64,000 nucleotides of DNA from Octopus sinensis (GCF_006345805.1 NC_043004.1:76074001-76138000), one strand, 5' to 3'. Positions 23,651 through 47,295 are shown, counted from the stretch's first letter. Program-made: numbers and translations. The notes: generated from the sequence alone by a model not told the origin.

Positions 23651-23685
<35 letters not shown>

Positions 23686-24015: not shown

Positions 24016-24046
<31 letters not shown>

Positions 24047-25251: not shown

Positions 25252-25869
25252 CTCGGTTGATGTAATTGAAGGCAACCAGATTATCTCTATTGCCATACCA
25301 TATTTCCAGTTCATCAATAGCAAAGTTAGGGTTAGCTCCATAACCAGCACTTGGTGCTCCGATATAGAATTCCTTATTTCCTGTAAGGCTTCTATCAAAG
25401 TTGACACCGTCAGAGTATCCGACAAGCTCGTTATTAATGTACATTTTTAATCCTGTATCTGGATGCCAGGAAAGTTCAACAAAGTGCCAAGTGTCCATTT
25501 CCGGGTTAGGAACTTGGATTTTCCATTTCTTTTTCGAATTAATGAAGATCACGTGTAAATAACCATTATCTTGGTACATTGATATTCCTCCATCACCTGA
25601 AGCAAAGTAATGCATGTTGTTATGGTAATTCCCAAACTTCATCCAACTGGACAGCAAAAATCCATGCGTACATTTGTCAAGGTTTCCAAAACAGACGTCG
25701 TCAAGTCGGCCAAAGTTCAAATACTGCCCGCTCTCGTTGAAATTTAAAGCATATCCAATTCTTCCTGGGATCTGGTGTGGGTTACCTTCGGCCATGATGT
25801 AGAGCTTATCATGGGTTAATACGTTACCATCAATTTTGTCCATGTCTATGAGGTAATTGGTTGGTCGAC
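25252..25869 (-). CDS. Coding exon: complete LamG/pentraxin-like domain 4 (last exon recognised; the gene probably continues past position 1)
   Basis: Acceptor tctttcattacag|GT and donor CGA G|GTAAGA; 618 nt, phase 1-1. Encodes GRIGYALNF...VCFGNLDKCTHGFLLSSW...WHFVELSWHPDTGLKMYINN...FYIG...IDELEIW...YINRG. Confidence 0.93.
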
Positions 25870-28056
25870 CTGTAATGAAAGATACAAACATAAATGAGAA
25901 AAGAAAGAATCATTTCTTCAAAAACAAAAAAAAAATAAATAAAATACTGCAAGTTGCTAAACGGAGAATAGGAGAAGGGAAAACCAGATTTAAATAGACC
26001 CACAGTGCAACTTTTTTAGATGGTCTTTGTGGCCAGGTGGTGTATGCCATAGATCAGGTTAATAAGATCACTTGATGGTTCCAGTTTCAATCCTCACTAA
26101 AAGCAGTGTTTTGTAAACACATAAAAAGCAACATCTGAATGTGTTCATTGCCAGGCTTGCCTTACTGGCTCCGGTGCTGGTAGCACATAAAAATCACCAT
26201 CTGAATTTTGTTATTTTTACGTGAATCGCTACCCCATTATTGCCCCACTTTTTACATGAATCGCTACACCATTATTGCCCCACGTAAAGAGCATCATTCG
26301 GGCATAGTCATTGCCAGTGCCGCCTGATTGGCTCCCATGCTAGTGGCACATAAAAAGCACCATTTTGAGCATGGTTGTTACCTGTGCTGCCTGACTGGCC
26401 CTCAAGCTGGTGGCACATAAAAAGCAACCACTACACTTTCAGAGTGGTTGGTGTTAGGAAAGGCATCCAGCTGTAGAAACTTTTCCAGATGAGATTGGAG
26501 CCTGGTGCAGCCTTCTGGCTTGCCAGCCCTCTGTCAAATCGTCCAACCCATGCCAGCATAGAAAACGGACGTTAAACGATGATGATGATGATGATGAAAT
26601 ACAAGTGGTGTGTCATTAACAAAAGTGGTTGAGTAGCAGGTGACAAGGGAGACAACTCAATTAGCGGACCAAAGAAGTTTTGGAAATGTTTTCTTTGAAC
26701 CCAAGGGACTTGCTTTTGGAGATATTCCTGGGATTACCCAATTGGCACTCTGTCAGTTATGATGATAAGGGGTCATGTTCATCCGATCAATGGAACAGCC
26801 CGCTCCTGAAATTAATGTGCAAGTGGCTGATTCTTCCACAGCCACATGTCCCCTTAATGTAGTTATCAGGGAGATTCAGCGTGACACAATGTGACAAGGT
26901 GGCCCTTTTGAATTACAGGTACATCTCAATTTTGTCAGCTGAGTGGACTGGAGCAATGCGATACAAAAGTGTCTCGCTTAAGGACAGAATGCACTGCAGA
27001 GTATTGAAGTCATGACCTTATAATTATTTCTTTATTGCCCAAAAGGGGCTAAACACAGAAAGGACAAACAAGGACAGACAAACGGATTAAGTCGATTATA
27101 TCGACCCCAGTGAACTGGTACTTATTTAATCGACCCTGAAAGGATGAAAGGCAAAGTCGTGCTCAGTGGAGTTTGAGCTCAGAACGTTGCGGCAGACGAA
27201 ATACCGCTAAGCCTTTCGTCCAGCATCCTAACGATTCCGCCAGCTCACCGCCTTACCCTAACTACTAAACACTTTTATAGAAGATTTCTAAGGCTTCTGG
27301 CATAACTTGTTGATTTCTTTCCATTTCATAAACACATGTACAGACGCATACCACAAACACACACACAGATGCATACCACATACATACACACACACATCGG
27401 GCAATACAAAATGTCTTATTTCTGTTACTTTAGTCGTGACATCTGGAAGCAATGAGATCTTCTATTTCATTTTAGCATAAAAAGTATGTCTCAAATGATT
27501 TCTGTCTATCTATCCAGACACGTATATTCCCTATCTAGCTACATCACTCTCTATTTATCTAGTCAACCATCCATCATTCGAACCGTCTGTCTGTCCATCC
27601 ATGTATGTCTATCTATCAATTAATCTGTTTTCACCAACCCATTTGTCAATCTAGTCATTATTCAGTTTTAAAAGGGTAACATTGATATGAATTTAAACAC
27701 CATGACATAAAATAATCTGCAAAGAAAGATGGAAAAGAAACACAATTGATGGTTATTTTACCTTAAGTATTGGAAAGATACCTTCCAAGTGATCATGTCA
27801 AAAATGAGAAAAGACTTTCTTTCCAACCGAAATTTTTTTCATCCATCCTGCTAATCTTTCTGTTCATCCATTCATCTATCCATTTCCCTCCATATATTCA
27901 TCTGCCTTTCCACTTGTTTATCAACCAATCTATCCATCTGTATATCTTTGTACCCAATCATCATTTTATTCATTCATCCATTTATTTATTCATCTACCCA
28001 TCTAGTACTTATCCATCCACCTTCCCACCCATATACCTACATAACTACATACAAAC

Positions 28057-28102
<46 letters not shown>

Positions 28103-28133
28103 TTATCTAATTATATATCTATCAATCTAATTA

Positions 28134-28231
<98 letters not shown>

Positions 28232-28315
28232 CCCATCTATCTATCTGTCTGTCTACCCATCCATCCATCCATCCATTCAACCATCCATCCATCCATCCAT
28301 CCACCCAGCTACCAG

Positions 28316-28373
<58 letters not shown>

Positions 28374-28418
28374 CGTTTACCTACTTTCTGCCTACCCAAC
28401 GGGTCTCCTCCTCCTCAC

Positions 28419-28574
28419 CAGTTTGTCTAATATTAAAGTTGTTCAAGTTAGGCACCCAAGGTAGAAGCAGTTTTGTTTGTACAACTGGACGTGGGTGTGC
28501 AGAGAAACAGGTTAGTGATTCCATCTGTTTTAGATCAGGTTCTTCTTCAAGCAACTTTTCATATCTTTCTCTTG
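28419..28574 (-). other. Candidate 156-nt phase 1-1 cassette exon
   Basis: Weak acceptor atttcataag|CA and donor ACT G|GTGAGG. Open in the gene's phase (ARERYEKLLEEEPDLKQMESLTC...NIRQT). No recognisable domain. Confidence 0.2.
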
Positions 28575-28778
28575 CTTATGAAATTAGTTTAGGCCTTCCT
28601 TCTTTTGAAGAATATTTAATAAATAATCTCAGCCAAAGTGGCTGAGAACATCTGATCCTCTTTACAAAGCTCTTGAACATAAAAGGAGACCAGGATGAAA
28701 ATGGCAACAACAGAAAGAAGGATGAGGATAATGGATCAACAAGAGAGCCAAGAAATAGCAGCCAAATATCCCTTAGAC

Positions 28779-29559
28779 CAGTGCTTCTCAAACTATCTGA
28801 TGTGGTGTACCAGCAGTATTTTTTTTCTAATGTGCCAGGGATTGGTAATATTTCTTATTGTCTTACTACCAGTGTCGCCTTACTGGCACCTGTGCCGGTG
28901 ACATGTGTAAAAAGACTGGCCCTGTACCGGTGGCACGTAAAAGGGCACCATCCGAGCGTGATCATTACCAACGTCGCCTTACTGGCACCTGTGCCGGTGG
29001 CATGTGTAAAAAGATTCAAGCAAGGTCGTTGCCAGTAACTCTAGACTGGCCCCCATGCCCGTGGCACGTAAAAGGGCACCATTCGAGCGTGATCATTACC
29101 AATGTCACCTTACTGGCACCTGTGCCGGTGGCATGTGTAAAAAGATTTGAGCGAGGTCGTTGCCAGTACCACCAGACTGGCCCCTGTGCTGGTGGCATGT
29201 AAAAAGCACCCACTACACTTTTGGAGTGGTTGGCGTTAAGAAGGGCATCCAGCTGTAGAAACTCTGCCAGATCAGATCGGAGCCTGGTGCAGCCATCTGG
29301 TTTACCAGTCCTCAGTCAAATCGTCCAACCCATGCTAGCATGGAAAGCAAACGTTAAACGATGATGATGGAAACAATATATATAATGAATATAATAAAAG
29401 CTGATAATTTTCTTTTATCTTGTATTTATTTTGTAAACAAATAATACAATATTACATAAACATTTTATAAAGTTTCTTTTCTGGAAACTCACTGGGTGCC
29501 AGCAACTGATGGCTCACGGACCGGTGCTGGTCCGTGGACCACCAATTCAAGTAGCACTG
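28779..29559. mobile_element. hAT-type MITE with 8-bp TSD and a nested SINE
   Basis: TSD CCTTAGAC at 28771-28778 and 29560-29567; termini CAGTGCT.../...AGCACTG; SINE at about 28865-29370 inside. Confidence 0.8.
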
Positions 29560-31392
29560 CCTTAGACCACACTTTTCTACTTCAACAAAGAAAAGAAATA
29601 GTGGACGATGTAGTCTTAGATAGACAACAATATGGACTGATTAAGACTGTATTGCCATCAGTCATGGTCCCACAGGGTTGCAGATGGTTTAGAGCAAAGA
29701 TTCTCAACCATTTTTTGTCTATGGATGTTTTTTAATTCCCATTTTACTTGAGTGGACCCCAATAACCATTCTATGTTTAAAAACAAGTTTCATAGAGATT
29801 TCTTTCAAAATTCCTATTTTGTTTTTCACACATTAACTTCTGTAAGATAAACTATCTAAAATGTTAGAGAATGGCTCCTGTGTTGGTGGCATGCAATAAA
29901 CACCATCCATGTGCGGGTCGTTGCCAGTGCTGCCTGACTGGTTATTATATAGTCAATCGACCTTCTAGAAATAGCAGCTAAATCTCCTTTAGATCTCAAG
30001 CTGCCTTCTTTAAAAAATGCATAGGTGCAAGCATGGCTGTGTGGTTAAGAATTTGCTTTGCAACATGAGGGATTCAGGTTCAATTCCACTGTGTAGCACC
30101 TTGGGCAAGTGTCATCTGTTATAGTCCTGGGCCGACAAATGCCTTGTGAGTCAATTTGAGAGATGGAAACTGTGCGGAAGCCGATCACGTGTGTGTGTGT
30201 GTGATTTTGTGTTTGTCAACAACACCTGATTCCAGATAAGGTAATATTTCCACATGGCCAGACATGGTTTTCATGGGAGACTGGGAATGAACAACATCGC
30301 TTGTATGACAATGATATTCGTTTATAACTATGATGTCAGGACAAGGTATACACACATGGGGCTTCTTTCAGTTTTCACCTACGAAGTCCACACAATTTTA
30401 TTGGGCCCAAGGTTATAATAGAAGACACTTGTCTAAAGTGCTGTGTAATGAGATTGAACCTGAGATCACATAGCTGAAAAAGCAAGCTTCTCAACCACAT
30501 GGCCATGCCTGTGCCTATCCTGACAACTGCAGGAAAAATATGGGGCAGGAAGCAAATTCCAGGCAAAGTGCCAAATTATAAGAACAGATGTGGTTATCTT
30601 TTGTTCTTTTTGGGGATGTTCACAAAAGTGAACTTCCTCCTTTTCTAACATCACAACATTCAATCAAGCCATTGAATTGCTTAAAGAACACTTTGAGAGG
30701 ATTCAGTCAGGCAAATACTTATGGACTTCATATTAGTTCACATTTATATATCATCATCATCATCGTCGTCGTCGTCGTCGTCGTCGTCGTCATCATCATC
30801 CTCCTCCTCCTCCTCCTCCTCCTCATCGTTTAATGTCTGCTTTCCATGCTGGTATGGGTTTGACAGTTTGACTGAGGACTGGCGAGCCAGAAGGCTGCAC
30901 CAGGCTAAATCTGATCTGGCAGAGTTTCTACAGCTGGATTGCCCTTCCTAATGCCAACCACTCCATGAGTGTAGTGGGTGGTTTTATGTGCCACCGGCAC
31001 AAGAGCCAGTCAGATGGTTTTGGCAACAGCCATGCTCAGAAGGTGTTTTTCACGTGCCACCTGCACAAGAGCCAGTCCAGTGGCACTGGCAAAAACCATG
31101 CTTGAATGTTGTTTTTCACCTGCCACCCGCACATATGCCAGTAAGGCAATGCTGGCAACAATCACACTCAAATGGTGCTTTTTCATGTGCCACCGACACG
31201 GGAGCCAATCCGTAGCCCTGGTAACGATCATGCTTGGATGAGCTTTTAACGTTCCACTGGCACGAGTGCCAACCAGGTGGCACTGTCATCGGTCATGTCA
31301 GAGATTTTGATTTTTTTTCATTTGCCTCAATAGGTCTTTGCAAGCAAAGTTCATCGTCCAATGAACGAGGGGTGCTCATAAGTGGGTCAGAA

Positions 31393-31738
31393 AAACGCCG
31401 CCGCCGTGGTGATCTCATTCTCGCCCACAACATCATAAGTGGAAAGTGTAACCTCTCGAAAGAGCTGTTCTTCACTCCTGCTCCAGAGCGTCGGCTGCGG
31501 GGTCATTTCGAAAAGCTCTACCTGCGACGATTTCATCTCAATCGAAGGAGAGGAGCTTTCTCCGTCCGGGTTGCGGATCCGTGGAACAAGCTGCCAGATG
31601 AGATGGTGAAGATGCCGACGACCGCTTTGTTTAAAGCCTCCCTTGACCTCAAGTGGCCTGAACTCTTTACATGAACACCACCCTGTACTTAACTCCATGT
31701 CCCCCTACATGGCCTTGCTATTTGCTTTTGAGCCAAAT

Positions 31739-31769
<31 letters not shown>

Positions 31770-31770
31770 G
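31393..31770 (+). mobile_element. 3' fragment of a second CR1/L2-clade LINE with an (AACT)n tail
   Basis: RRRRGDLILAHNII...LRGH...RRGAFSVRVADPWNKLP...FKASLD, stop at 31674, then (AACT)n at about 31739-31770. Confidence 0.85.
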
Positions 31771-33775
31771 TTACACCCCACACTTGGATGTACTTTTAAC
31801 ATTCCACTGGCATGAATGCCAATCAAGCAGTACTGTCATCAGCCACAGACGTAGCTGTGTAGTTAAGAAATGTGCTTCACAACCACAAGGTTCTGGGTTC
31901 TGTCCCAAAACATGGCACTTTGGGCAAGTGTCTTCTACTACAGCCTTTCATCATTTCGGTATTGGTAAAAAAAGTACCAGTTGTATACTGAGGTCAATGT
32001 AACCAACGAGGTCCTCTGTCGCACAAATTTCAGGCCCTGTGCCAAAATTTGAAACATTTTTATTATTAGGTGAATGGGGCTACTCTAAGCATGTACTTGT
32101 AGATTGGAGAGCAACAGATGGGTGAGGGTTTGTGCCCTTATTGATCAAGGAAATCATGAATCTGAGGGGGTTTCTTGATTAACCCTGGCTGGAGGTTCTT
32201 TTGTCTCAGGAGGACAGCATCATAGATGTAGTTATATATTCTGTATACTTTCTTCTCATTTCAACCTCTTTTTCCTTTTCTTTCCCTGCAACTTTGAATC
32301 TTTTATGTAAAACCTTTCCTACAAAAATCGTAAACTGTCCTTGTAATGTTTCCCTCATCTGATGCCCTTGAGGCAAATAAAAGAAATCATTATCAGCAGC
32401 AGCAGGAGGCAAGTGGATTGCATTGTCTAACAAAGCAGTGGTTCTTAACAGAGAAACATTGGCCACTCCACCACTGCCGCCGCCACCACCTTCGCTCTTA
32501 ATGAGAAGGCATAATTGAGTTGGCATCCATATAATTCTTCCTTATTAACCATGGTGCCTGACAAGTTTAGAATGTTTAACACCCTCTTAATAATATACGT
32601 CCACCCGCTTTTCCATCTTCACAAATACCCACCACCACCACCACCACCACCACCACCGTCTCCACCACCGTGAGGAATACGAGTCTAATGTCTCCTTCAT
32701 TTTCAAAAACAGTAGTAGGAAAAAAAACTTGGCTGTTATTTCTAACAAACTGGGTGAAGAAACTTCCTCGTTACCTCATTAATGTCATTATTGTAATAGC
32801 TTTCGACTCTGTTGTTATTATTTTGACTAAACTACTTTCAGTATTACATAAAAAAACATCATCAATCCATTAAGTCTGCAGATTGGATATATTACTGTCT
32901 AACTACCATTATTTACTCATTTAGACATGGCTGCTAAAAAGAAGCTAACAAAATCAAGCAAAATGCTTGAGAGAAAGTGAAACCATCCTATAATAAATAG
33001 TAGGGGTAGTGGTAGGAGCTGTGTGAACAGTAGGAGTAGCAGTGGTTGTGTTTATTGTTTTATTTCCTAAGTTTAATATTAGAAGTGGATATGTGCGTGC
33101 GTTGGCGATAATCTATGGTAATTATACTAGTTATTTTTGTAGCTGTAACTAATTGAATACCGTTTATTATTGTCGTAATTATACTCAGTAGTAGTAGTAG
33201 CAGCAGCAGTAGTAGCAGTATAGCTTTACTTACGGTTATGTGACTAAGAAGTTTGCTTTGCAAATACATAGTTTTCGGTTCGGTCCCAGTGCGCAACACC
33301 TCGGGCAAGTGTGCTACTATAACTCCAGGCAAACCAAGGACTTGCCAGTGGAAACCTGTCAAGTACACACACACACACACACACGTACCCTCACATATAC
33401 ACAGAACCCCCCCAACACACACATTACATACTGCACGCTAATATAACCATCTCCCACTCCCCACAACTTTATGCTTTCCAGAAAAAAAACAGACCAACAA
33501 ACACAGCTATATATACCTACAAAAGTTATACATATGACACCACTACACATACTACACACCCCACCCCTGCAGGGACATTACATTAATAATACACACTTCT
33601 CCCACTTCAAGATAACTCTTGCCAGCTTCACAACATACCCAACCAAGAGACATAGCTCCTAACCCAATCCCTGGACCCTTTTTCATTTCACCATATTTTT
33701 CACAACAGCCACTGATCAGTTGTGCTAGCCCACCTCTGACAATAGAGAGCAGTCACCATAGTCCCTTACATATCA

Positions 33776-33858
33776 GCCATCTCTGATGAGTGTAAAGTCA
33801 TATAATCAGATTGTTACGTAACACTCCATTGTATTCTTTACACGAAACTGTTTGGTAA
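33776..33858 (+). ncRNA. Second copy of the same hammerhead motif; 3' strand of stem I replaced by a SINE
   Basis: CTGATGA 33783-33789; perfect 8-bp stem II GTGTAAAG (33790-33797)/CTTTACAC (33836-33843); GAAAC-tgtttg-GTA ending at 33857. SINE sequence starts about 1 nt later. Confidence 0.7.
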
Positions 33859-34249
33859 CGTAACGGCAGACAAAATAGATATTTCTTTACTACCCACAAG
33901 GGGCTAAACACAGAAGGGACAAACAAGGACAGACTAACGGATTAAGTTGATTATATCGATCCCAGTGCGTAACTGGTACTTATTTAATTGACCCTGAAAG
34001 GATGAAAGGCAAAGTTGACCTCGGCGGGATTTGAACTCAGAATGTAACGGCAGACGAAATACTGCTAAGCATTTCGCCCCGCGTGCTAATGGTTCTGCCA
34101 GCTCGCCGCCTTTTTACATACCTATGCATACATACATACATACACACATGTACATACTCATGTAATGAAATGTGAGGTGAGAGAGAGGGAGAGAAAGAGA
34201 GATGAAGTAGGAGAAAGAACAATGAAAATATTCAAGAATGGTATCTTAC

Positions 34250-34900
34250 CTCTTTTGATATATCCATGCATCAATAAATAGTTGCGGTCACCAAACCAAT
34301 ACTTGATGTCATCAAAGGTTATGGTCCCAAACACTGTGTTGCCAACCAGATCTTTTCCTTTCCCAAGGTAAAACCTGTCTTCATAAGTGTTGTACTTGTA
34401 GTTTGTCTTCTTGACAGCGTTGACGCCATGTGAATCGTCAAAGGCAATAAGTCTGTTGTTGTTATAGATCACAAGCCCAGTTGTTGGATGCCAGGAAATT
34501 TCAATGAAGCGCCATTCACCTTCTGGAATCTCTTTTGAATCAACAATGGCTGTCCATTTCCTGGAAGACGTAGACAGCGTGAATTCGAACTTACCATTTA
34601 CGTATTTGAGCGAGAGACCATTGAGGGCTGTAGAGAAATAATCCATGTTGTTGAGCGTCTTGTTTAGACGCAACCACATTGACATGAGGAAACCATGTGG
34701 GCAGAGATCTAAGTTACCCAAACACATACGTGGGTGTTCGTTGACATCGATATACTGCGATCTCCCATTCAGCTGGATTGCTTTTCCGATTTTACCTGTC
34801 ACAAGATGAGGGTTACCATATGACTGGATTCTTATGCTAGGATGTGAAATTCTTTGACCAACCATCCGTTCAAAAGGGAAATAGTAGATATTAGGGCGTC
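34250..34900 (-). CDS. Coding exon: complete LamG/pentraxin-like domain 3
   Basis: Acceptor ttttacttcacag|GA and donor AGA G|GTAAGA; 651 nt, phase 1-1. Encodes GKIGKAIQLNG...MCLGNLDLCPHGFLMSMW...WRFIEISWHPTTGLVIYNN...FYLG...FDDIKYW...YIKRG. Confidence 0.93.
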
Positions 34901-36072
34901 CTGTGAAGTAAAACAGAGACAAATGTAATTAGACATAACTGAGTGTTATTGTTTTAGAAAACAATGGATCATCATCATCATTTAATGTCCGCTTTCCATG
35001 CTGGCATGGGTTGGACAGTTTGACTGAGGACTTGTGAACCAGAGGCTGCACCAGGCTCAATCTGATCTGGCAAGGTTTCTATAGCTGGATGCCCTTCCAA
35101 ATGCCAACCACTCCAAGTGTGTAATGGGTGTTTTTACGTGCCGGTGGCATAAGGGCCAGTCAGGTGGTTCTGGTAATGACCACGCTCAATGATGATGATG
35201 ATATATATAGGGTGTCCATAAATTACAGACATCACTAAACATATCCCCAATGGTTGTTATATTTTTTTGATAACATAACAGGTTAGATAGGATGATGTCT
35301 ATATTACAATATTACAATATTACAATAACCAATAAGATGTTGTGAATGTATATTACGATCATGAAATTAGCATTAGCTTATCTCACTCTTTCTCACAGAA
35401 CCCCTAGGAATCTTTTGCAGAACCCCATGGTTTCAGGGAGCACCGGTTGAGAAACGCTGCAATAGATAGACAAACGGGGCGATTTTAATTATTTCTCTGT
35501 AGATTGGAAAAAAAATGATGAGCAGCCTTAATGATTTTTTTAACATTATCGGGTTCTCATCAGGGGTCTACAGCATTTGACCAATTCCCGAGAAAGGGGC
35601 AGCCCATCTATATACACAACAAATCCAGTAACTTCAGAGAACTGGAGCAACTTACCTCCTCTAAGGTGTCCTACCCTTATTTTAGATAGTAAGGTATGGG
35701 TTGAGTGAAATTTTACTGCTATTTCAAGTGGATTGAATGACCACATTGTGACTCCCAAAGAACAAGATGGCAGCTACAACAAATGTAGTCAAACATGAGT
35801 GGCTGTGTGGTAAGAAGCTTGCTTGTCAACCACACGGTTCCGGGTTCAGTCCCACTGCATGGCACCTTGGGCGAGTGTGGTCTATTATAGCCTTGGGCCG
35901 ACCAAAGCCTTGTGAGTGGATTTGTTAGACAGAAACTGACAGAAGTGTGTTGTATATATATCTATCTATATATATATATATCTATATATATCTATATATA
36001 TATATATATATCCAGAATTACTTACCTCCCTTACACATAATTGTTTTACTCAGGGAGTAAATAAAAGATAAA

Positions 36073-36429
36073 CTAGCACTATTGTGCTAGTGCATGCATA
36101 TACAGCTGCGTGCATGCGCACATACACGCGAGTACTGTCCAAATCTCCGACCAATCACATACAGTTAGCTGACATTCAATTGGTGTATCAAGTTTCGGGC
36201 ATTTTGATTGGGTTTTGGATAGAAAATTCACAAAAAAGTCACTTCTATTGATTTTTTAATGGGTTTGTGGGGTGACTGGGGAAATGTAAAGACATGCATG
36301 ACCACCCTTGGACGGTTTTAAATGACCATAGAAAGTGCGAACCCTCTAACTGAAGAATTGTGGATTTGTATAAAGGACACTCACACACACACACACAGAC
36401 AGACATTTTGCTGTTTAAATATATAGAGA
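36073..36429 (-). mobile_element. Non-autonomous Helitron-like element starting at intron position +15 after the domain-2 exon donor
   Basis: Minus strand A|TCtctatatatttaaacagc...; internal (GT)n; terminal hairpin ctagcac-aata-gtgCTAG|T. Confidence 0.6.
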
Positions 36430-36443
36430 TGACGGAGACTTAC

Positions 36444-37073: not shown

Positions 37074-37297
37074 CTGAGTGAGAAGAGAAGAGATGGGCAG
37101 AGGTGAGGAACTGTGTAAGGAGCATTTAATTCAAATAATAAATTACCTTCATTGAAACAGTATTGCAAGATCAGGTGAAATGATGAGATTGAGAAGGAAA
37201 AAGACAAGAAGAAAAATCCGAGCCAACAAGAAATTGTCTTTACATCTTTCTGGACGTTTCTAAACTAAGAAAATATAAGATAGAGTGATATATATAT

Positions 37298-37331
<34 letters not shown>

Positions 37332-37340
37332 ATTATATAT

Positions 37341-37373
<33 letters not shown>

Positions 37374-37374
37374 G

Positions 37375-37486
37375 GATGGATGGATGGATGGATGGATGGA
37401 TGGATGGATGGATGGATGGATGGATGGATGGATGGATGGATGGATGGATGGATGGATGGATGGATGGATGATTAGATAGATAGATT

Positions 37487-37535
<49 letters not shown>

Positions 37536-37545
37536 ATAGATAAAT

Positions 37546-37608
<63 letters not shown>

Positions 37609-37704
37609 ATTAGATAGATAGATAGATAGATAGATAAATAGATAAATTAGATAGATAGATAGATAGATAGATTGATAGATAGATAGATAGATAAATAGAT
37701 AAAT

Positions 37705-37751
<47 letters not shown>

Positions 37752-37753
37752 AT

Positions 37754-37792
<39 letters not shown>

Positions 37793-37863
37793 ATAGATAA
37801 ATTAGATAGATAGATAGATAGATAGATTGATAGATAGATAGATAGATAGATAAATAGATAAAT

Positions 37864-37902
<39 letters not shown>

Positions 37903-37912
37903 ATAGATAAAT

Positions 37913-37947
<35 letters not shown>

Positions 37948-37955
37948 ATTAGATA
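37375..37955 (+). repeat. (GGAT)n followed by interrupted (GATA)n; continues at 39601-39860 beyond the Tx1 insertion
   Basis: Direct reading; recurring aaatagataaatt interruptions. Confidence 0.95.
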
Positions 37956-37956
37956 T

Positions 37957-39601
37957 GTTTCTTTATTAGCCACACAGGGCTGCACACAGATAGAACAAAT
38001 TACAAGGTAGAGCTTTTCTTTTGAAGGTTTTAAAAAAAAAAAAAAAAAGGAAGGGGGAGTTTCGATCAAAAGGGATCGTAAAAGGAGAGAAAGAGGACAA
38101 AAAAAAGGGGGGTTAAAAAAAAAAAAAGGGGGAGAGGGAAAAAAAATTGATCAATAGGGATCGTTATCACAGAAATGTCAATATGAAGTGTAAAGGGGAG
38201 GACAGGTGAGGTTTACCCGTGGAAAGAAAAGCCTACGGAAAAGACCACGGTAACCTCGGTCAATGAAGTCACATTTTATATTTCTTTTTTTTTTTTTTTT
38301 TTTTTTTTTGCAAATAAGCAACTCTCTGTTTTCGATTTCTGGGTTCATAGGACTATGCTCAAGGTGGCTTCGTCATTCATACGTGCCATTCTTGCTACAT
38401 TCACCCATCTTTTTTTAAAACATTCGCTAGACAAAACTTGCCTCTCTACTCTCACTTTCCTTTTCAAGTGGTACTTGAAGAAGTTGATGAGAGATTGACC
38501 AGAGAGGAAAGTGTTTGTCTCCAATCCTTTCAGACGCGTCCACCAGATACATTCTTTCGCCATAGCCACAAGGATGATGTAAATAGCTCTTCCTTCCCGT
38601 TTGAAGGAAGGAGGCGTGACAATATTGACGATAGACTCAGCTGATAAACCGACTCGTCCCACACGTGACAGCAGTTGTTCGACATAAGCCCACAGGTCGG
38701 AAATTGTTGGACACTGAACGAGTGCGTGCAGAACGGTTTCGTCGCTCTGACCGCATCTCGGGCAGGTCGGCCCCGTGTTTCTCGAGCCGTGTCTGTAGAG
38801 CTTATCCCGAACGGGTAGCGCTTCTCGGTAGCACTGCCAGGCCAGGGATCTCTGGAAGTTGTCCATGGGCCCTGGCCCGAAAGTCGTCCCGAACAGGCGG
38901 GTCAGGTACTCCTCGTCGACGTCCAGGTTCGCCCCGAGCTCGTCGTCGTACCTCCCCTCCACTAAACCCCTATAGAATGCTTTGGTTGTGTTGAAGTCAC
39001 TTAAGGTCGACCCAGGACGGCAGAGTTGCTTGAGAGCAACGCGACACTCGCGGTGCCATTCGCCCTTCCTCGGCCTCTTTTTGATCCACGACTGCAGTTC
39101 GGTCATGGAGACGAGCTGCGGGGAAGCGTGCCTCACAAACGGCGACCACACCTGTTCACCGTCGTCTACATAGAGCCAGAGATGTCGCGGTCTCAGCGCG
39201 TGTCTGCGCATCATCAACCACGGCATGCCCAGCCCTCCTTTTAACGGGTGTTGACAGCAAATGGATCGCCTGACCATTGGGACGCATCCTTTCCACAAGA
39301 AGAGAAAGAGGATGCGTTGTAGTTTGGTGATGGTAGGGTCGGGACAAGGTACGACGGTCAGGCGGTAGTAGATGACGGACGCGATGTACGTGTTCGCCAC
39401 CTCCGCTCGACCTTTTAGGGACAGTTTCCTCTCGGCCCATTGCCGGGCGAGAGTGACCACCCTACTCGTTATCTCGTTCCAGTTCTTCTCCACTTGGAGG
39501 TCCGGACCAAACCAGACCCCGAGCAACTCAACCGGGCCGTCGGTCCAGCGTCCCACGACGGAGGCGCTGGTGGACGGCATGGGCTTGCTTCTCCAGGTGC
39601 C

Positions 39602-39604
<3 letters not shown>
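37957..39604 (-). mobile_element. 5'-truncated Tx1-like L1-clade LINE (ORF2 C-terminus with zf-RVT, plus 3' UTR) inserted in a (TCTA)n tract
   Basis: Uninterrupted ORF 38345-39604: LGTWRSKP...LLGVWFG...KLSLKGRAEVANTY...GGLGMP...LPVRDKL...CPRCGQSDETVLHALVQC. The 3' UTR ends gccctgtgtggctAATAAAgaaac. (GATA)n flanks both sides. Confidence 0.9.
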
Positions 39605-39635
<31 letters not shown>

Positions 39636-39814
39636 TAGATAGATAGATAGATAGATAGATAAATAGATAAATTAGATAGATAGAAAGTTATATAGATAGA
39701 TAGATAGATAGATAAGTAGGTAGGTAGGAGGTATGTTGGTAGGTAGATAGATAGATAGATAGACAGATAGATAGATAGATGGATAGAAAACTAGCTAGCT
39801 AGATAATTTAGATT

Positions 39815-39852
<38 letters not shown>

Positions 39853-40053
39853 AAGAAAGAAAGATGACATGAGCACCTAGAATTAATAGGCCCTCTGATA
39901 GTTAAAGAAATTTTTGTGAATTAACAAATAAAATTTTAACCTAATTGTTAAGCTGAAGACAAACAATCATTTTTTAAAAAATTCCTTGAAAGAGCTAAAC
40001 GAAAAACAACTTGTAAATTTAACATTAATAAGAGCAAAATAAGGATCACTTAC

Positions 40054-40503
40054 CTAGATGTCTGAGTTCTCTTTTGGTTGAAACATATTTTGGCCAGAAC
40101 CGGAACTCATCAACTATAATGATACCTTGGCCAGACTTACTGCACTGTGTGTCAGAACATCCAATGTAGAAATGTCTTGGCTGTGAATTAGGGGAACTAT
40201 CAGCTGCCTTTTTCTGTTTGGGAGGTTGGGATTTTGAATGTGCGTTGATTCCATTAATGTAGAGCTTTAAACCTTGTAATTTACTCCAAGTAGCTGTCAC
40301 ATGGTACCAATGGTAAGGAAGAATGTTCATACTCTTCTCGGTCCATTCTAAGCCAGCTTTGTTGCGGAATACAAATTCCAAAACTCCTTTACGATAGTAC
40401 ATGGCAATTCCATGAGAATTTTCCAAATGGGCACCACTTGACATGAAGAGCCGTCTTTTGTATGTAGGGTTACGGAAACTCATCCACATGCTAATTGTGT
40501 AAC
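40054..40503 (-). CDS. Coding exon: C-terminal part of LamG/pentraxin-like domain 1
   Basis: Acceptor ttttctcatttttacag|GT and donor CTA G|GTAAGT; 450 nt, phase 1-1. Encodes YTISMWMSF...WYHVTATWSKLQGLKLYING...FYIG...IIVDEFRFW. The W-x-H-V-x-x-T-W-x4-G-L-K-x-Y-x-N-G strand matches the GPR133-type domain as I recall it. Confidence 0.92.
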
Positions 40504-40556
40504 CTGTAAAAATGAGAAAAATCATAACAGTTTTATTATTATCATTATTATTATTA

Positions 40557-40586
<30 letters not shown>

Positions 40587-40587
<1 letters not shown>

Positions 40588-40981
40588 CTCTCTATATATA
40601 AAGCTGAAGTTGTCTGTGTATGGCAGGTTTGGTAGCCTTCAACTAACACTATCTCCTCCGAGACCCTGCAGCGCAAGTTGACCAAAATTGAGAGTATGAT
40701 AGAAGAAGGCTTGCTCTTTCTTCCGTAGAAGAAAAAATTCAAATCAGACCATGTTAACATCAAAAATTATTTACATCAAAAAGGTGCTTTTTTTTTTATA
40801 TGAAAATCCCTATTTTTTACGATTATTTGACTGCTGTGTCGCCATTTTTCAGTGTATTTCAACCAGAAAAATGTTCACTTAAAGAGAATAACAAGCTACA
40901 TAATGCAAAATTTTTACTTTTCAAAAATTCCAATTCTAAGGGATTGAAACAAGCCCGAGCAACGCTGGGTGATACTGCTAG
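40587..40981 (+). mobile_element. Non-autonomous Helitron-like element
   Basis: A|TC start; CTAG|T end; subterminal hairpin cccgagc-aac-gctggg at about 40954-40969; no TSD. Confidence 0.7.
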
Positions 40982-41563
40982 TTCTTATTATTATTAAGGT
41001 GGTGAGCCACCAGAATCGTTAGCATGCTGGATGAAATGCTTTGCAGTATTTTTTCCTGTTGCTACATTCCAAGTTCAAATTCCGCCAAGGTTGACTTTGT
41101 CTTTCATCCTTTTGGGGTCGATAAATTAAGTACCAGTCAAATACTGGGGCCAATGTAATCAACCAGCCCCCTCCTACCAAATTTCAGGCCTTGTGCCTTT
41201 AGTAGAAAGAATTATTATTATTATTGCCTTTGCACAGCTTCTAATGCTGGAGATGTATTACAGTGTCATCTGTTCACTACCAGTGAACTAAGGTAACACC
41301 TCTTACTTTTCGAGCACCTTGTGAAGTATTCAAGCGGTTCCAAACCATGCTGTTTTCTGCAAGTGCTCCACCCTTATTGCAGCCCCTATTTGTTCCACGT
41401 ACTTCTCGAGATTTTTGCTCACTGTTCCCAGGGCTCTGACAATTATTGGTACTATTACTACCTTTTTCATTTACCACAACTGCTTAACTTCCCAAGCTAA
41501 CCTGTCATATCTCTCCACTTTTCTTTATTTTCTCATTATTATTATTATTATTATTATCATTAT

Positions 41564-42380
41564 CCTCTGTCAGGTGGCAATGGCAAAGGAGGTAGTGTCG
41601 TGGATAAGACTGAAAGGACTAAAGACAGATACTTTCCTCTTCGGCCCTCATTGACTTTTTCCAAGTTCCACTTGAAAAGGAAAGTGAGGGTAGAGAGGGA
41701 AGTTCTCTGCCCCTGTCCCAGTAAATTTGTTGGAAGGTGAGTGTATGTGGCAAAGATGACCCTTGTGAACGGGCCTACTCCGAACTTTTGTTTGTAAACC
41801 AGAGAAGTTGAGAAGGAGAGAGGTGCCTGCTGAGGTGAACCTGACGGTTGGGATAACCAGGTTGTGTGAGGTTCTGCAGTTGTCCCTTTGAGGAACTCCT
41901 CCCTTTTGGGGGAATTTTTATTGTTAAGTTGTTTTGTTATTTGTTTTTGTTACTTATTGTATACATGGCATTGTTCAACACCCCACTTGTCTCTTGCATT
42001 ATATTATCCCTCTTTGTTTTACTTTCAGCCCTTATGGCCAATAAATTTTTTTATTTATGTGCCCTTTTCAAGCCTAGCCAGGCTCATGGGCCCGGTTTCC
42101 CGGTTTTTGTGGCGTATTCTGTTCCCCCCAGCTGGATGGGACGTCAGTCCATCACAGCGTTACTCAAGAAACAGGAAGAAAGAGTGAGAGAAAGTTGGGG
42201 CGAAAGAGTACAACAGGGGTAACCACCACCCCCTGCCGGAGCCTTGTGGAGCTTTTAGGTGTTTTCACTCAATAAACGCACACAACGCCTGGTCTAGGAA
42301 TTGAAACCACGATCCTCCGACCACGAGTCCACTGCCCTAACCACTGGGCCATTGCACCTCCACATGGCCAATAAAAAAAG
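41564..42380 (+). mobile_element. Older 3' fragment of a related Tx1-like LINE, interrupted by a SINE near its end
   Basis: VAMAKEVVSWIRLKGLKTDTFL and ...FHLKRKVRVEREV match the 38 kb copy (VAMAKECIWWTRLKGLETNTFL...YHLKRKVRVERQV). It has frameshifts and ends cagcccttatggccAATAAA. (ATT)n-like sequence lies on both sides. Confidence 0.8.
42046..42363 (-). mobile_element. tRNA-derived SINE with 12-bp TSD
   Basis: TSD ATGGCCAATAAA at 42034-42045 and 42364-42375. Head gtggaggtgcaatggcccagtggttagggcag...ggtttcaattcc has A/B-box-like motifs. Confidence 0.85.
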
Positions 42381-42429
42381 TATTATTATCATTAACTTGT
42401 GAAAATTGCAAGAATGTATGGTACCTCTC

Positions 42430-42762
42430 TAAGCGTAGACCTGTGAGTGGGAGAGAAGGAATTGGAGATGGCACTTGCTCTTGGTGTTCCTGGGGGGGGG
42501 GAGAATCTCAGACAATGGGTCTCCTTAATTATCCCCAAAGGTCATCCTGTATCAAAAGGGCTACATCTCTACCATACCCACCCCTACTATTTTTCTTTAA
42601 ACCATTGTATACTATATATATGTCCCTTCCTTTTCGTTGTACACTGTGTATATTTACGTTTATTTTCGTTATATGTAAACCCCATCTCTTTATATCTGTC
42701 TTTGTATTGTTCCCCCTCATCCTTCGCCCTGGTGACCAATAAATAAAATCGTTATTAATATT
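42430..42762 (+). mobile_element. Possible further Tx1-type 3' UTR fragment
   Basis: Ends cgccctggtgaccAATAAAtaaa, similar to the terminal motif of the other two copies, followed by (ATT)n. No coding sequence left. Confidence 0.35.
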
Positions 42763-43011
42763 ATTATTATTATTATTATTAAGGTGGTGAGCCAGCAGAA
42801 TTGTTAGCATGCTGAATGAAATGCTTAGCAATATTTTTTCCTGTTGCTACATTCCAAGTTCAAATTCCACCAAGGTTGACTTTGTCTTTCATCCTTTTGG
42901 GGTCGATAAATTAAGTACCAGTCAAACACTGGGGCCAATGTAATCAAATAGTCCCCTCCTGCCAAATTTCAGGCTTTGTGCCTTTAGTAGAAAGGATTAT
43001 TATTATTATTA

Positions 43012-43047
<36 letters not shown>

Positions 43048-43254
43048 ATTAAAAGAGTGCAAGGTGATATGTAATAAAACATAGGTTGTGTTTGTTGAGC
43101 TATATTTCAACAGTATATCTATCTATCTTTTTTGGGTTCAAATAAAGAAATTAAAAAATTCCAGCTAGCCTATCCTGCATTCTCTGCAACACAGTATGGA
43201 TGACATCAAGTTTTGTTCATTTGCAACTGGTTAAAACGAGGAAAAATACCAAAA

Positions 43255-43318
43255 CATAATAATAATAATAATAATAATGATAATAAATAATAATAATAAT
43301 AATAATATAATAATAATA

Positions 43319-43381
<63 letters not shown>

Positions 43382-43390
43382 TAATAATAA

Positions 43391-43429
<39 letters not shown>

Positions 43430-43625
43430 TAATAATAATAATAAATAATAATAATAAATAATAATAATATAATAATAATAATAAATAATAATAATAATAA
43501 TAATATAATAATAAATAATAATAATAATAATAATAAAATAATAATAATAATAATAATATAATAATAATAAATAATAATATAATAATGATAATAATAAATA
43601 ATAATAATAATAATAATAAATAATA

Positions 43626-43673
<48 letters not shown>

Positions 43674-43700
43674 TAATAATAATAATATAATAATAATAAT

Positions 43701-43730
<30 letters not shown>
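43255..43730 (+). repeat. Long interrupted (AAT)n microsatellite
   Basis: Direct reading. Confidence 0.95.
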
Positions 43731-43733
<3 letters not shown>

Positions 43734-44139
43734 GAGAGGAGAGGAAAGAGAACAGTTACTCAAAAATGGTTTTGTATAAATCCAATGGAATTCTCCAGTT
43801 CTTTTGTTCCTCCCTCCAGGGCGTGACACTAGAAACTCAGAAATATATTTATATTTATGTTCATGTTTATGAGTTTACTAGTTTCACACCCTGGAATAAT
43901 GAACAAAATGACAAGAGAATTCCACCAGGTTTATGCAAAACTCTCTGATTAACTGTTCTCTTTCATTCTCCCTATTGTCCCCTACCCCTCCTGATTTAAC
44001 CAGTTAGGAACAAATGAAACTTGATATTGTTTTGTCTCAGAAGGAATGCAATGAATTCCAGTTGAAATTTTGAATTTCTGTATTTCTGTGTAGTTTTCAT
44101 TTTTCTATTTTGAACACAGAGAAGGCAGACATATTGTCG

Positions 44140-44465
44140 AAATACCCCTGTTGGTGACACGTAAAAAGCACTGTCCGAACGTGGCAGATGCCAGCACCGC
44201 CTGACTGGCGTCCGTGTCAGTAGCACGTAAAAGCACCAACCGATCGTGGCCGTTTGCCAGCCTCCTCTGGCCCCTGTGCTGGTGGCATGTAAAAAGCACC
44301 CACTACACTCACGGAGTGGTTGGCGTTAGGAAGGGCATCCAGCTGTAGAAACATGGCTAGATCAGACTGGAGCCTGGTGCAGCCTCCTGGCTTGCCAAAC
44401 CCCAGTCAAATCGTCCAACCCATGGCAGCATGGAAAACGGATGTTAAACGATGATGATGATGATG
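44140..44465 (+). mobile_element. SINE 3' module ending in a (GAT)n tail, with internal 40-60 bp tandem units; representative copy
   Basis: ...aaaagcacccactacactc...aggaagggcatccagctgtagaaac...ccaacccatg...cgttaaacgatgatgatg. Also at about 4390, 8160, 12190, 26200, 28865, 30820, 34975, 47560, 48015, 50580, 59580, 61225 and 63550. Confidence 0.85.
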
Positions 44466-45668
44466 ATTGTTTGATTTAATAAATAGAGTCACCTTCTATT
44501 TTATTTCACATCACAATACGTTCTTCTTATTGTGTATGTATCTTTGTGATGAGTTATGTCAATCTTCCTACAAACAGCTATTATCATCAAGTTAGCACAT
44601 TCTGATTTAATTAGCAGGAATTTTATTTTGAGGTTTGGTGACAACAAGTCTCCTCGAATCTCAAGGATCTTTCTTAGGGTTCTTTCAGAATAGAGGACAG
44701 TACTTAGTACTTCTCTTTCAGGTTGCCTTGGCAGACATCATTTAAAACAAATTTCATGGAAATTAGTGAATTCTTCAATCTAAAAATAACAGAGTTTCTA
44801 GTTGTTTCTTATCTTCTTCTGTGTGGAATCCTGTTTATAAACAGTCTCAGTTCAAACTCTGCCAAGGTTGATTGATTTTACCTTTCATCCTTTTGGGGTC
44901 AATAAAATAAGTACCAGCTGAGCATTTGGGTCAATGTAATCAGCTGAACCAAACCTCTTTCCTTAAAATTGCAGACCTTGTGCCAAAACCTGAAACCAAT
45001 ATTTTTACGCTGTACTTTTGAGATCAAGCACAGGGTTTTAAAACAAATATTTGGCAAGAACAATAATGTTACTAATTCTTTTTCTTTTCATAAGTTAGAG
45101 TCAAAGAGCAGAAGATACAAGAACAAATAATATTTAACCTTTGGAAATATACCCTCCCGGGGAGGAATTTGAGGATTCCAAGAGAAAAATTTGGGGATTC
45201 CAGAGGAGAAACTATTTTTAGGCTGAAGAATTTGTTATCGGTATCCACTCTGTTATTGTAAGATTTATTTCCTTAATGGTGAATTTAAGAATGCTAATGT
45301 GGAAATGTATACACGGCTGTTAATGTTATGCAATAAACTGTGTTGTATACAAGATAGAGATGATGGAGAAAAGGCAGGGAGGAACTTGTAAAAAGAAAAC
45401 TACAGGAGGTTAAGACACACCAATTGAAACAATTTATATACAGTGGAAGCCACTTATTATCATAGATTATGTTATCAATTGGTTATTGTTATCAAGAAAA
45501 AGTGTTGGTTACAAAAATGTACAGGATATTCTTAAGTTTAACCCTTTTGTTACCATATTTCTGTTGAGATGATCTGTGCTTCTTTCAATTAAATTTAAAT
45601 ATAAAGGAAGAATTTAGTAAAATAACTTAGTTATCATTCAGCTGGTGTTAGGAACATAAAGTTGGGTG

Positions 45669-45873
45669 GAGAACTATGTTAAGGGTCTGTGTGTCTGTGG
45701 AGCACTCAGCCACTTCTCCCTGAGAACTATGTTAAGGGTCTGTGTGTCTGTGGAGCGCTCAGCCACTTCTCCCTGAGAACTATGTTAAGGGTCTGTGTGT
45801 CTGTGGAGCGCTCAGCCACTTCTCTCTGAGAACTATGTTAAGGGTCTGTGTGTCTGTGGAGTGCTCAGCCACT
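45669..45873 (+). repeat. 53-bp tandem repeat (about 3.9 copies) of a SINE central segment
   Basis: Unit starts at 45669, 45722, 45775 and 45828 (gagaactatgttaagggtctgtgtgtctgtggagc.ctcagccact...). Confidence 0.95.
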
Positions 45874-46636
45874 TGCATGTTTATTTCATGAGCTGGCTGT
45901 TTAGTCGATGAGATCAACTGGAACCCTTGTTATCAACCTGTTGTCATCTAAAACAGTGCTTCACAGCTGGTATACCATGGCACACTGGGGTGCCACGAGA
46001 CGATGCTAGGTGTGCCACAGTGTAGCCTGAATATAAATTTTTCCCCTATACGTTTTGTTCAGGTGTGCCACCAAATTTTGAAAAGGATATAAGAGTACCA
46101 CAAGCAAAAAAAAGAAGTTGTGGAGCTTTGATCTAAAGGGATCTGTCCCAAAGTGATCACAATAAGCAGCTTCCATTGTAATTGACTTATGTCTTCTTCA
46201 TTAAGTAATGAGTAAAAGTAATTATTTGTAATATGAATGAATGTTTTTGGAGGAGGGGTACTACTAATTAAATAACCCCAATTTTCTGCTACATTTTGAT
46301 AACAATAATGATAGTGAAAAGTAGGTTCCGGTCTGTCAATCACTGGTTCACTGCATATTTGATGATGAGAGTGATAAGGGAGCATCTGTGCAACTTGGGC
46401 AGAACAAATGTCACAAAGCACGCTCAAACATACAAACATATACACACAGACATCTGTGAGATTGGATAAGTTTGTGTGTATTGCATAGAAGAGGAACCTG
46501 ATGTTTTGCGACTGACCTTTCGTATGTGCATGCGTGCGTGTGTGTGTATGTGTGTGAGAGTGACATTTGTACTGAAGCAGAACATCGCCAGTTTCCTCTC
46601 ACTGTTTTTTTGCATGATGCGTCTCTCTCTTTCTCT

Positions 46637-46674
<38 letters not shown>

Positions 46675-47079
46675 CACACACACACACATTTATGGAGACA
46701 TGCACTTATATGTACTCGTAAATTCTCGCAATTAACATTCATATTACTATTATATTATAGGTATGTGTTTTTGCTTAGATTCAGTTTGTCTCTGAATGAG
46801 CAGATAGACTATGGTTAAAGGCAACCCAGTCACGACCACCCCATCTATTTTTTCCAGTCACAATGCATGTTGGGATACATTATTCAAAGTATCCTCTGAT
46901 TCATTTTTTAAAAAGCAATTGGAAAGATTCAGTTGCTATTTCTAGCAGGTCAAGATGGTACTATCACTGGCTTGTAGGTAGAAGCTTGTTGTATTAATTA
47001 CCAAATACATATACATAGAGGCACACACACACACACACACACACACAGGTATTCTAATATTTGTATTTATAATACTTAC

Positions 47080-47295
47080 CGTCTGGACACAGGTCAAGAT
47101 CCATTACACAGTCGAAACGGTGAGTGAGGCCATTTATTCGAATGAATTGGCTGTTCTGAACATACAGGGCCTTGTTCTTAACACCCTGTCCAAAAATGGG
47201 ATATCCAGAAACAGTAGCGTCCAGTCCAGAGTTCGGATCTAGCTGACCCTTGGAAAATACATCCATCGGAAGGTAATATTTCGCTGGTTGTTGAA
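47080..47295 (-). CDS. Coding exon: N-terminal half of LamG/pentraxin-like domain 1 of a multi-domain extracellular protein (ADGRD1/GPR133-type domain)
   Basis: Acceptor ttttccaatttcag|TT and donor GAC G|GTAAGT; 216 nt, phase 1-1. Encodes VQQPAKYYLPMD...GVKNKALYV...DCVMDLDLCPDG. It joins the 40503 exon in frame (CPDG/YTISMW), rebuilding the C-x7-C-x2-G-[FY]-x2-S-x-W motif seen in the other domains. Confidence 0.88.

Follow-up and report, generated by a model that had tools for sequence, protein, structure and literature searches.

Four Laminin_G_3 modules in Octopus sinensis as a probable internal stretch of a PHRED-1-like receptor gene

The five exons and the gene model

A stretch of 64,000 nucleotides (nt) of Octopus sinensis DNA (GCF_006345805.1 NC_043004.1:76074001-76138000), referred to here as the window, contains five exons at 25252-47295 that encode four tandem Laminin_G_3 modules and are considered below as a candidate part of a large receptor gene related to planarian PHRED-1. 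Positions are those of the whole window, and the exons are read on the minus strand. The window has the composition of animal DNA, is high in AT and carries many repeats. Each of the five open segments has a polypyrimidine-(C/A)AG acceptor on one side and a G/GTAAG donor on the other. All ten splice sites are canonical, the reading frames are intact across 2,565 nt, every exon length is a multiple of three and every border lies in phase 1 (1-1). Splicing the five exons gives 854 full codons plus split Gly codons, i.e. a product of approximately 855 amino acids (aa). Both this product and the exon coordinates had been put forward in an earlier reading made from the sequence alone (the original prediction); the coordinates were matched exactly when the AG/GTAAG borders were re-read on the minus strand.

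Exon 1 (47080-47295, 216 nt, borders TTTCAG/TT ... GACG/GTAAGT) encodes the N-terminal third of the first repeat (R1), up to C-x6-C-P-D-G. Since it follows an acceptor and shows neither a plausible start codon nor a signal peptide, the gene extends upstream. A start at an ATG in the open reading frame (ORF) 5' of exon 1 was rejected, as it precedes the acceptor, is not followed by a signal peptide and lies in a frame that is not conserved. Exon 2 (40054-40503, 450 nt), which has an (AAT)n run directly 5' of its acceptor, encodes the remainder of R1 (YTISMW ... VDEFRFW ... RHLG). Each of the remaining exons encodes one whole module: exon 3 (36444-37073, 630 nt) encodes R2, exon 4 (34250-34900, 651 nt) encodes R3 and exon 5 (25252-25869, 618 nt) encodes R4. 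Exon 5 terminates in a donor, and the gene therefore runs on downstream, toward position 1; its downstream part probably lies beyond that position. The four introns, also on the minus strand (40504-47079, 37074-40053, 34901-36443 and 25870-34249), are crowded with microsatellites, copies of an element resembling a short interspersed element (SINE) and one retrotransposon fragment. No further coding exons were detected within them (25870-47079).

Repeats, domain family and predicted fold

The division of R1 between exons 1 and 2 falls at the Gly that follows C-x6-C-x2. In tblastn searches on the window the repeats match one another with E values from 1e-5 to 6e-41 and 24-35 % identity, in agreement with the four divergent repeats of the original prediction. 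The motifs G-[FY]-x2-S-x-W, W-x-[FH]-x3-[ST]-[WF], G-L-x-x-Y-x-N, [FI]-Y-[IL]-G and [IVF]-D-[ED] had also been listed there, and each occurs once in every repeat, the sole departure being one extra FDD in R3. The cysteine spacing had been given as C-x7-C and needs correction, since all four repeats have C-x6-C. In an alignment with relatives the invariant residues are two Cys, G, W, G-L, G and D, and all of them are present in the four modules.

Pfam assigns the spliced protein to Laminin_G_3 (PF13385) with an E value of 3.4e-45 and 154.3 bits against a cut-off of 27.6, in four stretches, one per repeat. Weaker overlapping matches are to Toxin_R_bind_N and to classical Laminin_G models, and the Pfam Pentaxin HMM gives no match to the spliced protein at E <= 1. 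With phmmer, the spliced protein gave nothing meaningful among Protein Data Bank (PDB) sequences, the single match being PilX (E 0.68). A profile compared with the PDB matches S-layer LamG (E 5e-9), toxin HCN domains and, weakly, PTX3 (E 0.017); this last match is the only likeness to the classical pentraxins. An AlphaFold2 model of R1, calculated from an eight-row alignment, is an all-beta sandwich of 13 strands with a mean pLDDT of 79.8 and a pTM of 0.82. Its top Foldseek matches are the lectin-like HCN jelly rolls of the tetanus and botulinum toxins (TM-score ~0.68, range 0.6-0.7; E 3e-10; probability 1.00). The HCN subdomain of clostridial neurotoxins is thus the best structural match of the R1 model, at an identity of 12-19 %, which is a likeness of fold only. 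On the Pfam matches and this model, the modules are Laminin_G_3 domains with a predicted ConA-like jelly-roll fold, and the lectin/LamG fold named in the original prediction stands.

Conservation in a cuttlefish

Among named proteins the closest is CAE1310992.1, an incomplete model of the cuttlefish Acanthosepion pharaonis; the first homology search gave no other cephalopod protein. The A. pharaonis locus holds all five exons in unchanged order, with AG/GT at identical codon positions. Exon lengths there are 216, ~444, 630, 651 and 630 nt, identical to the window for 216, 630 and 651; within the cuttlefish locus exon 1 lies at 9992-10207, exon 3 at 15322-15951, exon 4 at 18626-19276 and exon 5 at 23773-24402. 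Amino-acid identity to the window is 49, 36, 45, 56 and 61 % for exons 1-5. The deposited CAE1310992.1 model skips parts of the five exons, and no other gene model lies within 10 kb on either side of the cuttlefish locus. In a tblastx comparison of the window with this locus only the five exons and simple repeats are conserved, and the exons are therefore under long-term constraint. On this comparison the five exons are not a chance pattern of ORFs.

In the collections searched, identity to the window product stayed at or below 47 % for every protein, which suggests that the exons are missing from the protein sets of close relatives. Logan/ENA fragments gave no junction-spanning transcript, none of them being more than 47 % identical to the window protein.

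Full-length relatives with a WD40 tail

A HMMER search with a profile of the repeats returned 227 representatives below 1e-30. The best match is CAH1790210.1 of the annelid Owenia fusiformis (3,736 aa, 692 bits), in which Pfam finds 6 Laminin_G_3 stretches, 10 Laminin_G_2 stretches and WD40. The N-terminal half of this protein reads as a signal peptide, a classical LamG domain (LNS1), a Cys-rich EGF-like linker and four Laminin_G_3 modules at residues 246-1102. After the modules come a Pro/Thr linker, nine LamG domains with two EGF domains (LNS5 being multiplied in Owenia) and a Gly-rich stalk; the protein ends with a transmembrane (TM) segment at ~3011-3033, the motif WAFYKCKPGWC, a low-complexity region and a WD40 propeller. 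Residues 1350-2112 are collinear with neurexin-1alpha (PDB 3QCW, E 3.9e-122) over two LamG domains and the intervening EGF. Two giant metagenome proteins (7,023 and 7,436 aa, on contigs of 42-189 kb) have 23-24 matches to the module profile.

In RefSeq, one locus of Pomacea canaliculata is given as three genes. The first, LOC112562040, has 3 Laminin_G_3 and 1 LamG and adjoins the second, a 'neurexin-1b-like' gene with four further LamG, two EGF, the stalk and a TM segment with WAFYRCKPGWC; the third is a WD40 gene. GenBank PVD37937.1 unites all three, including WD40. One RefSeq gene of this locus carries the name 'vegetative incompatibility protein HET-E-1-like'; such naming, like the division of the locus in RefSeq, seems to be erroneous annotation. 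Models from Candidula unifasciata and Plakobranchus ocellatus combine LNS domains, the same TM motif and the same WD40 in one protein. Altogether four independent models join a neurexin-like ectodomain and TM segment (WAFY[RK]CKPG[WC]C) to a WD40 region that is 42-53 % identical to that of Owenia (residues 3345-3730 in Owenia, 1965-2429 in Pomacea, 974-1289 in Candidula and 1361-1582 in Plakobranchus). A PHRED-1-like gene is also present on a 10,971-bp metagenome-assembly contig (ENA ERZ27333047 k141_1122375), where it occupies 1679-10971 on the plus strand and is nearly intron-free. It consists of three long ORFs on one strand with gaps of ~600 bp between them: the first encodes a signal peptide, LNS1, EGF and four modules, the second two modules and further LamG, and the third the rest of the LamG/EGF array.

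The LamG/EGF array of these relatives is collinear with the LamG-EGF-LamG order of neurexin-1alpha, and they too cross the membrane once as type I proteins and have a stalk that looks glycosylated. Canonical neurexins, including that of the mollusc Babylonia, differ in having a syndecan-type tail (PF01034), no WD40 and no cassette between EGF-A and LNS2. The Pomacea protein is 24-33 % identical to canonical neurexins (insects, fish and Babylonia) and 40-41 % identical to gastropod members of the family; because of this difference the WD40-tailed family is a neurexin paralogue and not a neurexin orthologue. Canonical neurexin was accordingly rejected as the identity of the relatives, given their Laminin_G_3 cassette, their WD40 tail and this low identity.

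Relation to planarian PHRED-1

The combination of neurexin-like ectodomain and WD40 tail has a published counterpart. PHRED-1 of the planarian Schmidtea mediterranea is a 2,536-aa TM protein whose extracellular part has LamG and EGF domains and whose intracellular part has WD40, and it was termed a divergent neurexin-1 homolog by its authors (Adler & Sanchez Alvarado 2017, doi 10.1101/131789). Its site of expression is muscle, and planarian muscle fibres require it to reach their normal thickness and patterning (doi 10.1101/131789). The combination of LamG, EGF and WD40 was reported from lophotrochozoans only, namely Schistosoma, Lottia, Octopus and Capitella, and the homologues in other lophotrochozoans were described as unstudied (doi 10.1101/131789). 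Further literature turned up by text search is mostly planarian, and none of it concerns molluscs or cephalopods.

A profile of the WD40 tail agrees in its species spread with this lophotrochozoan distribution. It matches A0A0L8FK86 of Octopus bimaculoides, a fragmentary WD40-only model, at 67 % identity, and next Helobdella, Schistosoma (S. japonicum), Hydatigera, Mya and Dreissena, followed by cyanobacterial WD40 proteins at ~25 %. A query with the Pomacea LNS domains returned no cephalopod protein at E <= 1e-20. The module-bearing relatives (Owenia, Pomacea, Plakobranchus and Candidula) share LamG and EGF domains, one TM segment and WD40 with PHRED-1, whereas the annelid and mollusc proteins add a cassette of 4-6 modules after LNS1-EGF. 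The window shows the cassette only. The original prediction had supposed that the gene may be uncharacterised in molluscs; this holds for molluscs, but the family has already been named and studied functionally once, in planarians (doi 10.1101/131789), and by that prediction's own criterion part of the novelty is lost.

Orthology of the individual modules

Scores against the module profile separate three types of protein. Modules of PHRED-1-like (PHRED-type) proteins reach 141-205 bits in Owenia, 160-195 in Plakobranchus and 175-213 in Potamilus. Those of mollusc proteins with EGF, Laminin_G_3 and VWD domains (VWD-type) reach 72-110 bits, and those of G protein-coupled receptors of the adhesion type (aGPCRs) 30-74. 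PHRED-type modules cover the full length of the profile, whereas aGPCR modules cover only its core (positions ~35-195), without the strand at the N terminus or the 'WYGxRDxLxAxGYIxRG' helix at the C terminus. Over 220 aa, R1 shares 41 % identity with Owenia module 1; with the best sea-star module it shares 28 %, over 116 aa.

In a neighbour-joining tree built from 54 modules, with 40 bootstraps for split support, each window module falls with modules of a particular position. R1 groups with the first modules of Owenia and of the metagenome contig (100 %), R2 with Owenia module 2 and Potamilus module 1 (77 %), R3 with Owenia module 3 and Potamilus module 2 (91 %), and R4 with the fourth modules of Pomacea and Plakobranchus (87 %). 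The aGPCR group is supported by 23/40 splits and the VWD-type group by 31/40. By these groupings the window modules are position-specific orthologues of PHRED-type modules. The four modules therefore diverged before the annelid-mollusc split and are not the product of a recent expansion. Recent tandem duplication was also rejected because the repeats share so little identity with one another and each has its own annelid orthologue.

Extent of the gene beyond the five exons

Other exons were sought throughout the window. ORF lists of 1-25200 and 47300-64000 gave none, tblastn of the four repeats found no exon beyond the five, and tblastn with ~170 proteins of relatives (including LNS, EGF, WD40, GAIN and 7TM parts) recovered only the five exons. 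One tblastn match at 22946-23053 is low-complexity sequence. In the cuttlefish the distance to the next exons exceeds 10-13 kb; in the window they would be more than 16 kb upstream and more than 25 kb downstream. By comparison with the relatives, the signal peptide, LNS1 and EGF are expected to be encoded upstream, either outside the window or undetected in 47296-64000. The number of modules is four in Owenia and six in gastropods and in the metagenome contig. Since exon 5 ends at a donor, cephalopod modules R5 and R6 may lie past position 1; no R5/R6-like exon was detectable in 1-25251 by tblastn with relatives.

A probable cephalopod member of the PHRED-1 family

Taken together, the module orthology and the architecture of the relatives make it likely that the five exons come from the interior of a large cephalopod gene whose orthologues are the PHRED-1 family of lophotrochozoans. 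We infer that the cephalopod transcript joins the five exons to an LNS/TM/WD40 part, and whether it does continue into that part is the residual doubt attached to this reading.

Several observations weigh against it. No LNS, EGF, TM or WD40 exons were found within the window, and the cuttlefish locus has none in 10 kb upstream and 13 kb downstream. Because the window and the cuttlefish locus hold no further exons, the cephalopod link to the rest of the gene is drawn from orthology alone. The clade of all PHRED-type modules has moderate support in the tree (19/40 splits), and BLASTP places R4 marginally nearer to module 3 of Owenia than to its module 4. The published account of PHRED-1 gives 6 LamG and 9 EGF domains and no Laminin_G_3, ConA-like or pentraxin modules (doi 10.1101/131789). 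The likeness to the planarian protein was drawn from this published domain description, and the sequences of the relatives come from gene prediction, not from cloned cDNA.

Alternative explanations

The alternative that survives best, though we consider it unlikely, is that in cephalopods the cassette sits in another gene, encoding either a secreted multi-lectin or an EGF-Laminin_G_3-VWD protein. The cephalopod models are indeed fragments, CAE1310992.1 consisting of modules only and A0A0L8FK86 of WD40 only, and RefSeq divides the Pomacea locus as well. VWD-type modules are the second-closest type in profile score. Such mollusc proteins (Haliotis rubra LOC124272364, Ylistrum balloti LOC132563855 and Sinanodonta KAL3863376.1) have full-length profile matches, including the N- and C-terminal extensions, and three or four tandem modules. 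They differ in their layout of EGF, F5/8-C and VWD domains and in forming a separate clade, and the window modules are orthologous by position to the PHRED type, not to the VWD type. In both cephalopods the acceptor at exon 1 and the donor at exon 5 make the block internal to a larger transcript. Furthermore, four gene models and one genomic contig from other lophotrochozoans hold the cassette and the LNS array together. A large secreted lectin-fold protein, one of the possibilities in the original prediction, is not favoured either: full-length relatives have a TM segment and cytoplasmic WD40.

The original prediction had named the adhesion GPCR first, that is, an ADGRD-type receptor with a tandem Laminin_G_3 array and GAIN/7TM exons past position 1. 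This we regard as very unlikely for the five exons. Receptors with such arrays do exist, e.g. Acanthaster LOC110986089 (EGF_CA, six modules, GAIN, GPS and 7tm_2), an Antedon protein and Lingula LOC106162206, and the nearest solved structure to the sea-star GAIN/7TM part is ADGRD1 (E 1.7e-70), followed by ADGRL3 (6.6e-66). The pentraxin-like (PTX-like) domain of ADGRD1 has been described as part of the LamG3 domain (PMC4982218). The aGPCR modules share a C-x6-C-x2-G-x3-S-x-W motif, and ADGRD1 and the invertebrate ADGRD-like receptors have the Laminin_G_3 family and the jelly-roll fold in common with the window. Their modules are however only 21-28 % identical to those of the window, a comparison made with modules of the invertebrate receptors, as the PDB chains of ADGRD1 begin after the PTX-like domain. 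They score far below PHRED-type modules and form a clade of their own with an orthology by position of their own, and R1 is closer to Owenia module 1 than to any sea-star module. Human ADGRD1 has one module. Neither ORF listing nor tblastn with aGPCR relatives revealed a GAIN, GPS or 7TM exon in the window (the original prediction had already noted that no GAIN or 7TM exon is visible), and the closest relatives have LNS, TM and WD40 instead. What remains of the aGPCR proposal is thus the domain family shared with ADGRD1; the receptor class does not hold, since the modules follow the neurexin-like WD40-tailed proteins. The six-module arrays of sea star and feather star, and in part that of the brachiopod, are orthologous by position, and the six-module array seems to be old within the ADGRD-like receptor class.

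A polycystin-like receptor, the remaining class named at the outset, finds no support, as neither the spliced protein nor 22 relatives scanned with Pfam contain a PKD, REJ, PLAT or channel domain. That the exons are a decaying, non-functional remnant (pseudogene) is highly improbable: the dearth of closely similar proteins, the seeming lack of annotation in close relatives and the heavy invasion of the introns by repeats would fit it, but the five frames and ten splice sites are intact, the cuttlefish keeps frames, borders and three exact exon lengths at 36-61 % identity, and the family-wide invariant residues are present in 4/4 modules.

Repeats and other features of the window

Interspersed repeats are found throughout the window. 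A 411-aa ORF at 38345-39580 in intron 2, on the same strand as the gene, has a zf-RVT match (E 4.6e-8) and is the C-terminal part of ORF2 of a retrotransposon without long terminal repeats (non-LTR). Two ORFs at 19061-19786 (plus strand, 241 aa) and 31234-31674 (plus strand, 146 aa) resemble the reverse-transcriptase tail of long interspersed elements, with the motifs RRGDLI and WNKLP; the two share 36 % identity across 81 aa, and neither has a Pfam match at E <= 0.01. A SINE-like interspersed element of ~150-350 bp occurs at 47481-47900 and at least 14 other sites on both strands, in copies that are 77-89 % identical. Examples lie at 4418-4679, 8187-8344, 26281-26559, 29161-29341, 30846-31114, 34998-35135, 44152-44431, 50605-50957, 59599-59830 and 63563-63646, and one copy lies ~100 bp upstream of exon 4. 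The element explains many spurious ORFs that read '...LDALPNTNHSKSVVG...'.

Long microsatellites are present at 12553-12852 ((AGAT)76), 16922-17242 ((TA)162), 37337-37955 ((ATAG)153) and 43256-43728 ((ATA)156), and an (ATC)n-based array of 24/27-nt units lies at 60694-61232. Tandem repeats include 3.9 copies of a 53-nt unit at 45669-45874 (98 % matches) and 2.1 copies of a 131-nt unit at 28930-29204. The region 20000-24000 has a GC skew of +0.29 to +0.33 and consists of G-rich, poly-purine low-complexity sequence with spurious poly-Gly, poly-Pro and poly-His ORFs, and no coding signal was found in it.

Proposed architecture, function and significance

If the cephalopod gene is PHRED-1-like, its product would follow the order seen in the relatives: a signal peptide, LNS1, an EGF-like linker, 4-6 Laminin_G_3 modules and the LamG/EGF array LNS2-LNS6, and then a Gly/Pro-rich stalk, one TM segment, WAFY(R/K)CKPGWC, a low-complexity cytoplasmic stretch and a WD40 propeller. 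The window would contain the first four modules of the Laminin_G_3 cassette, with R5 and R6 (if any), the LNS array, the TM segment and WD40 placed downstream beyond position 1. The modules would be extracellular lectin-like beta-sandwiches, each stapled by a disulphide through C-x6-C, and they may lengthen the ectodomain and add ligand-binding surfaces for partners in the matrix or on cell surfaces. By analogy with planarians, where the tissue is muscle, the receptor may act in cell-matrix or cell-cell adhesion, and its cytoplasmic WD40 propeller could serve as a docking platform that couples it to intracellular partners. We infer these ligand and function statements for the cephalopod protein from such analogy.

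Symmetrical phase 1-1 exons are expected of mobile extracellular modules under exon shuffling, and the phase 1-1 module exons of the window fit the occurrence of related arrays in three receptor classes. A wider proposal, to which we give an even chance, is that a cassette of 4-6 modules between LNS1-EGF and LNS2 of annelid and mollusc PHRED-1 is ancient, arose before annelids and molluscs separated and is akin to the ADGRD-like six-module arrays and the VWD arrays. The cassette would then be a distinctive ligand-binding region, built as a phase 1-1 array that was shuffled among the three receptor classes, and its cephalopod part would have been missed by annotation because the gene is large and fragmented.

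What is new is the Laminin_G_3 cassette, which is absent from the published description of PHRED-1; the family itself is known, if little studied, and the five exons are apparently an unannotated member of it. The finding is not a new kind of receptor and opens no long-standing question. It shows that the cephalopod gene spans more than 64 kb, and the gene seems to be missing from current protein sets. Annotators gain a concrete gene to repair. Few surface receptors that are confined to a single clade, here the lophotrochozoans, have a phenotype on record; PHRED-1 is one of them, and work on muscle and cell adhesion in cephalopods or molluscs gains a defined region of its ectodomain for ligand tests.

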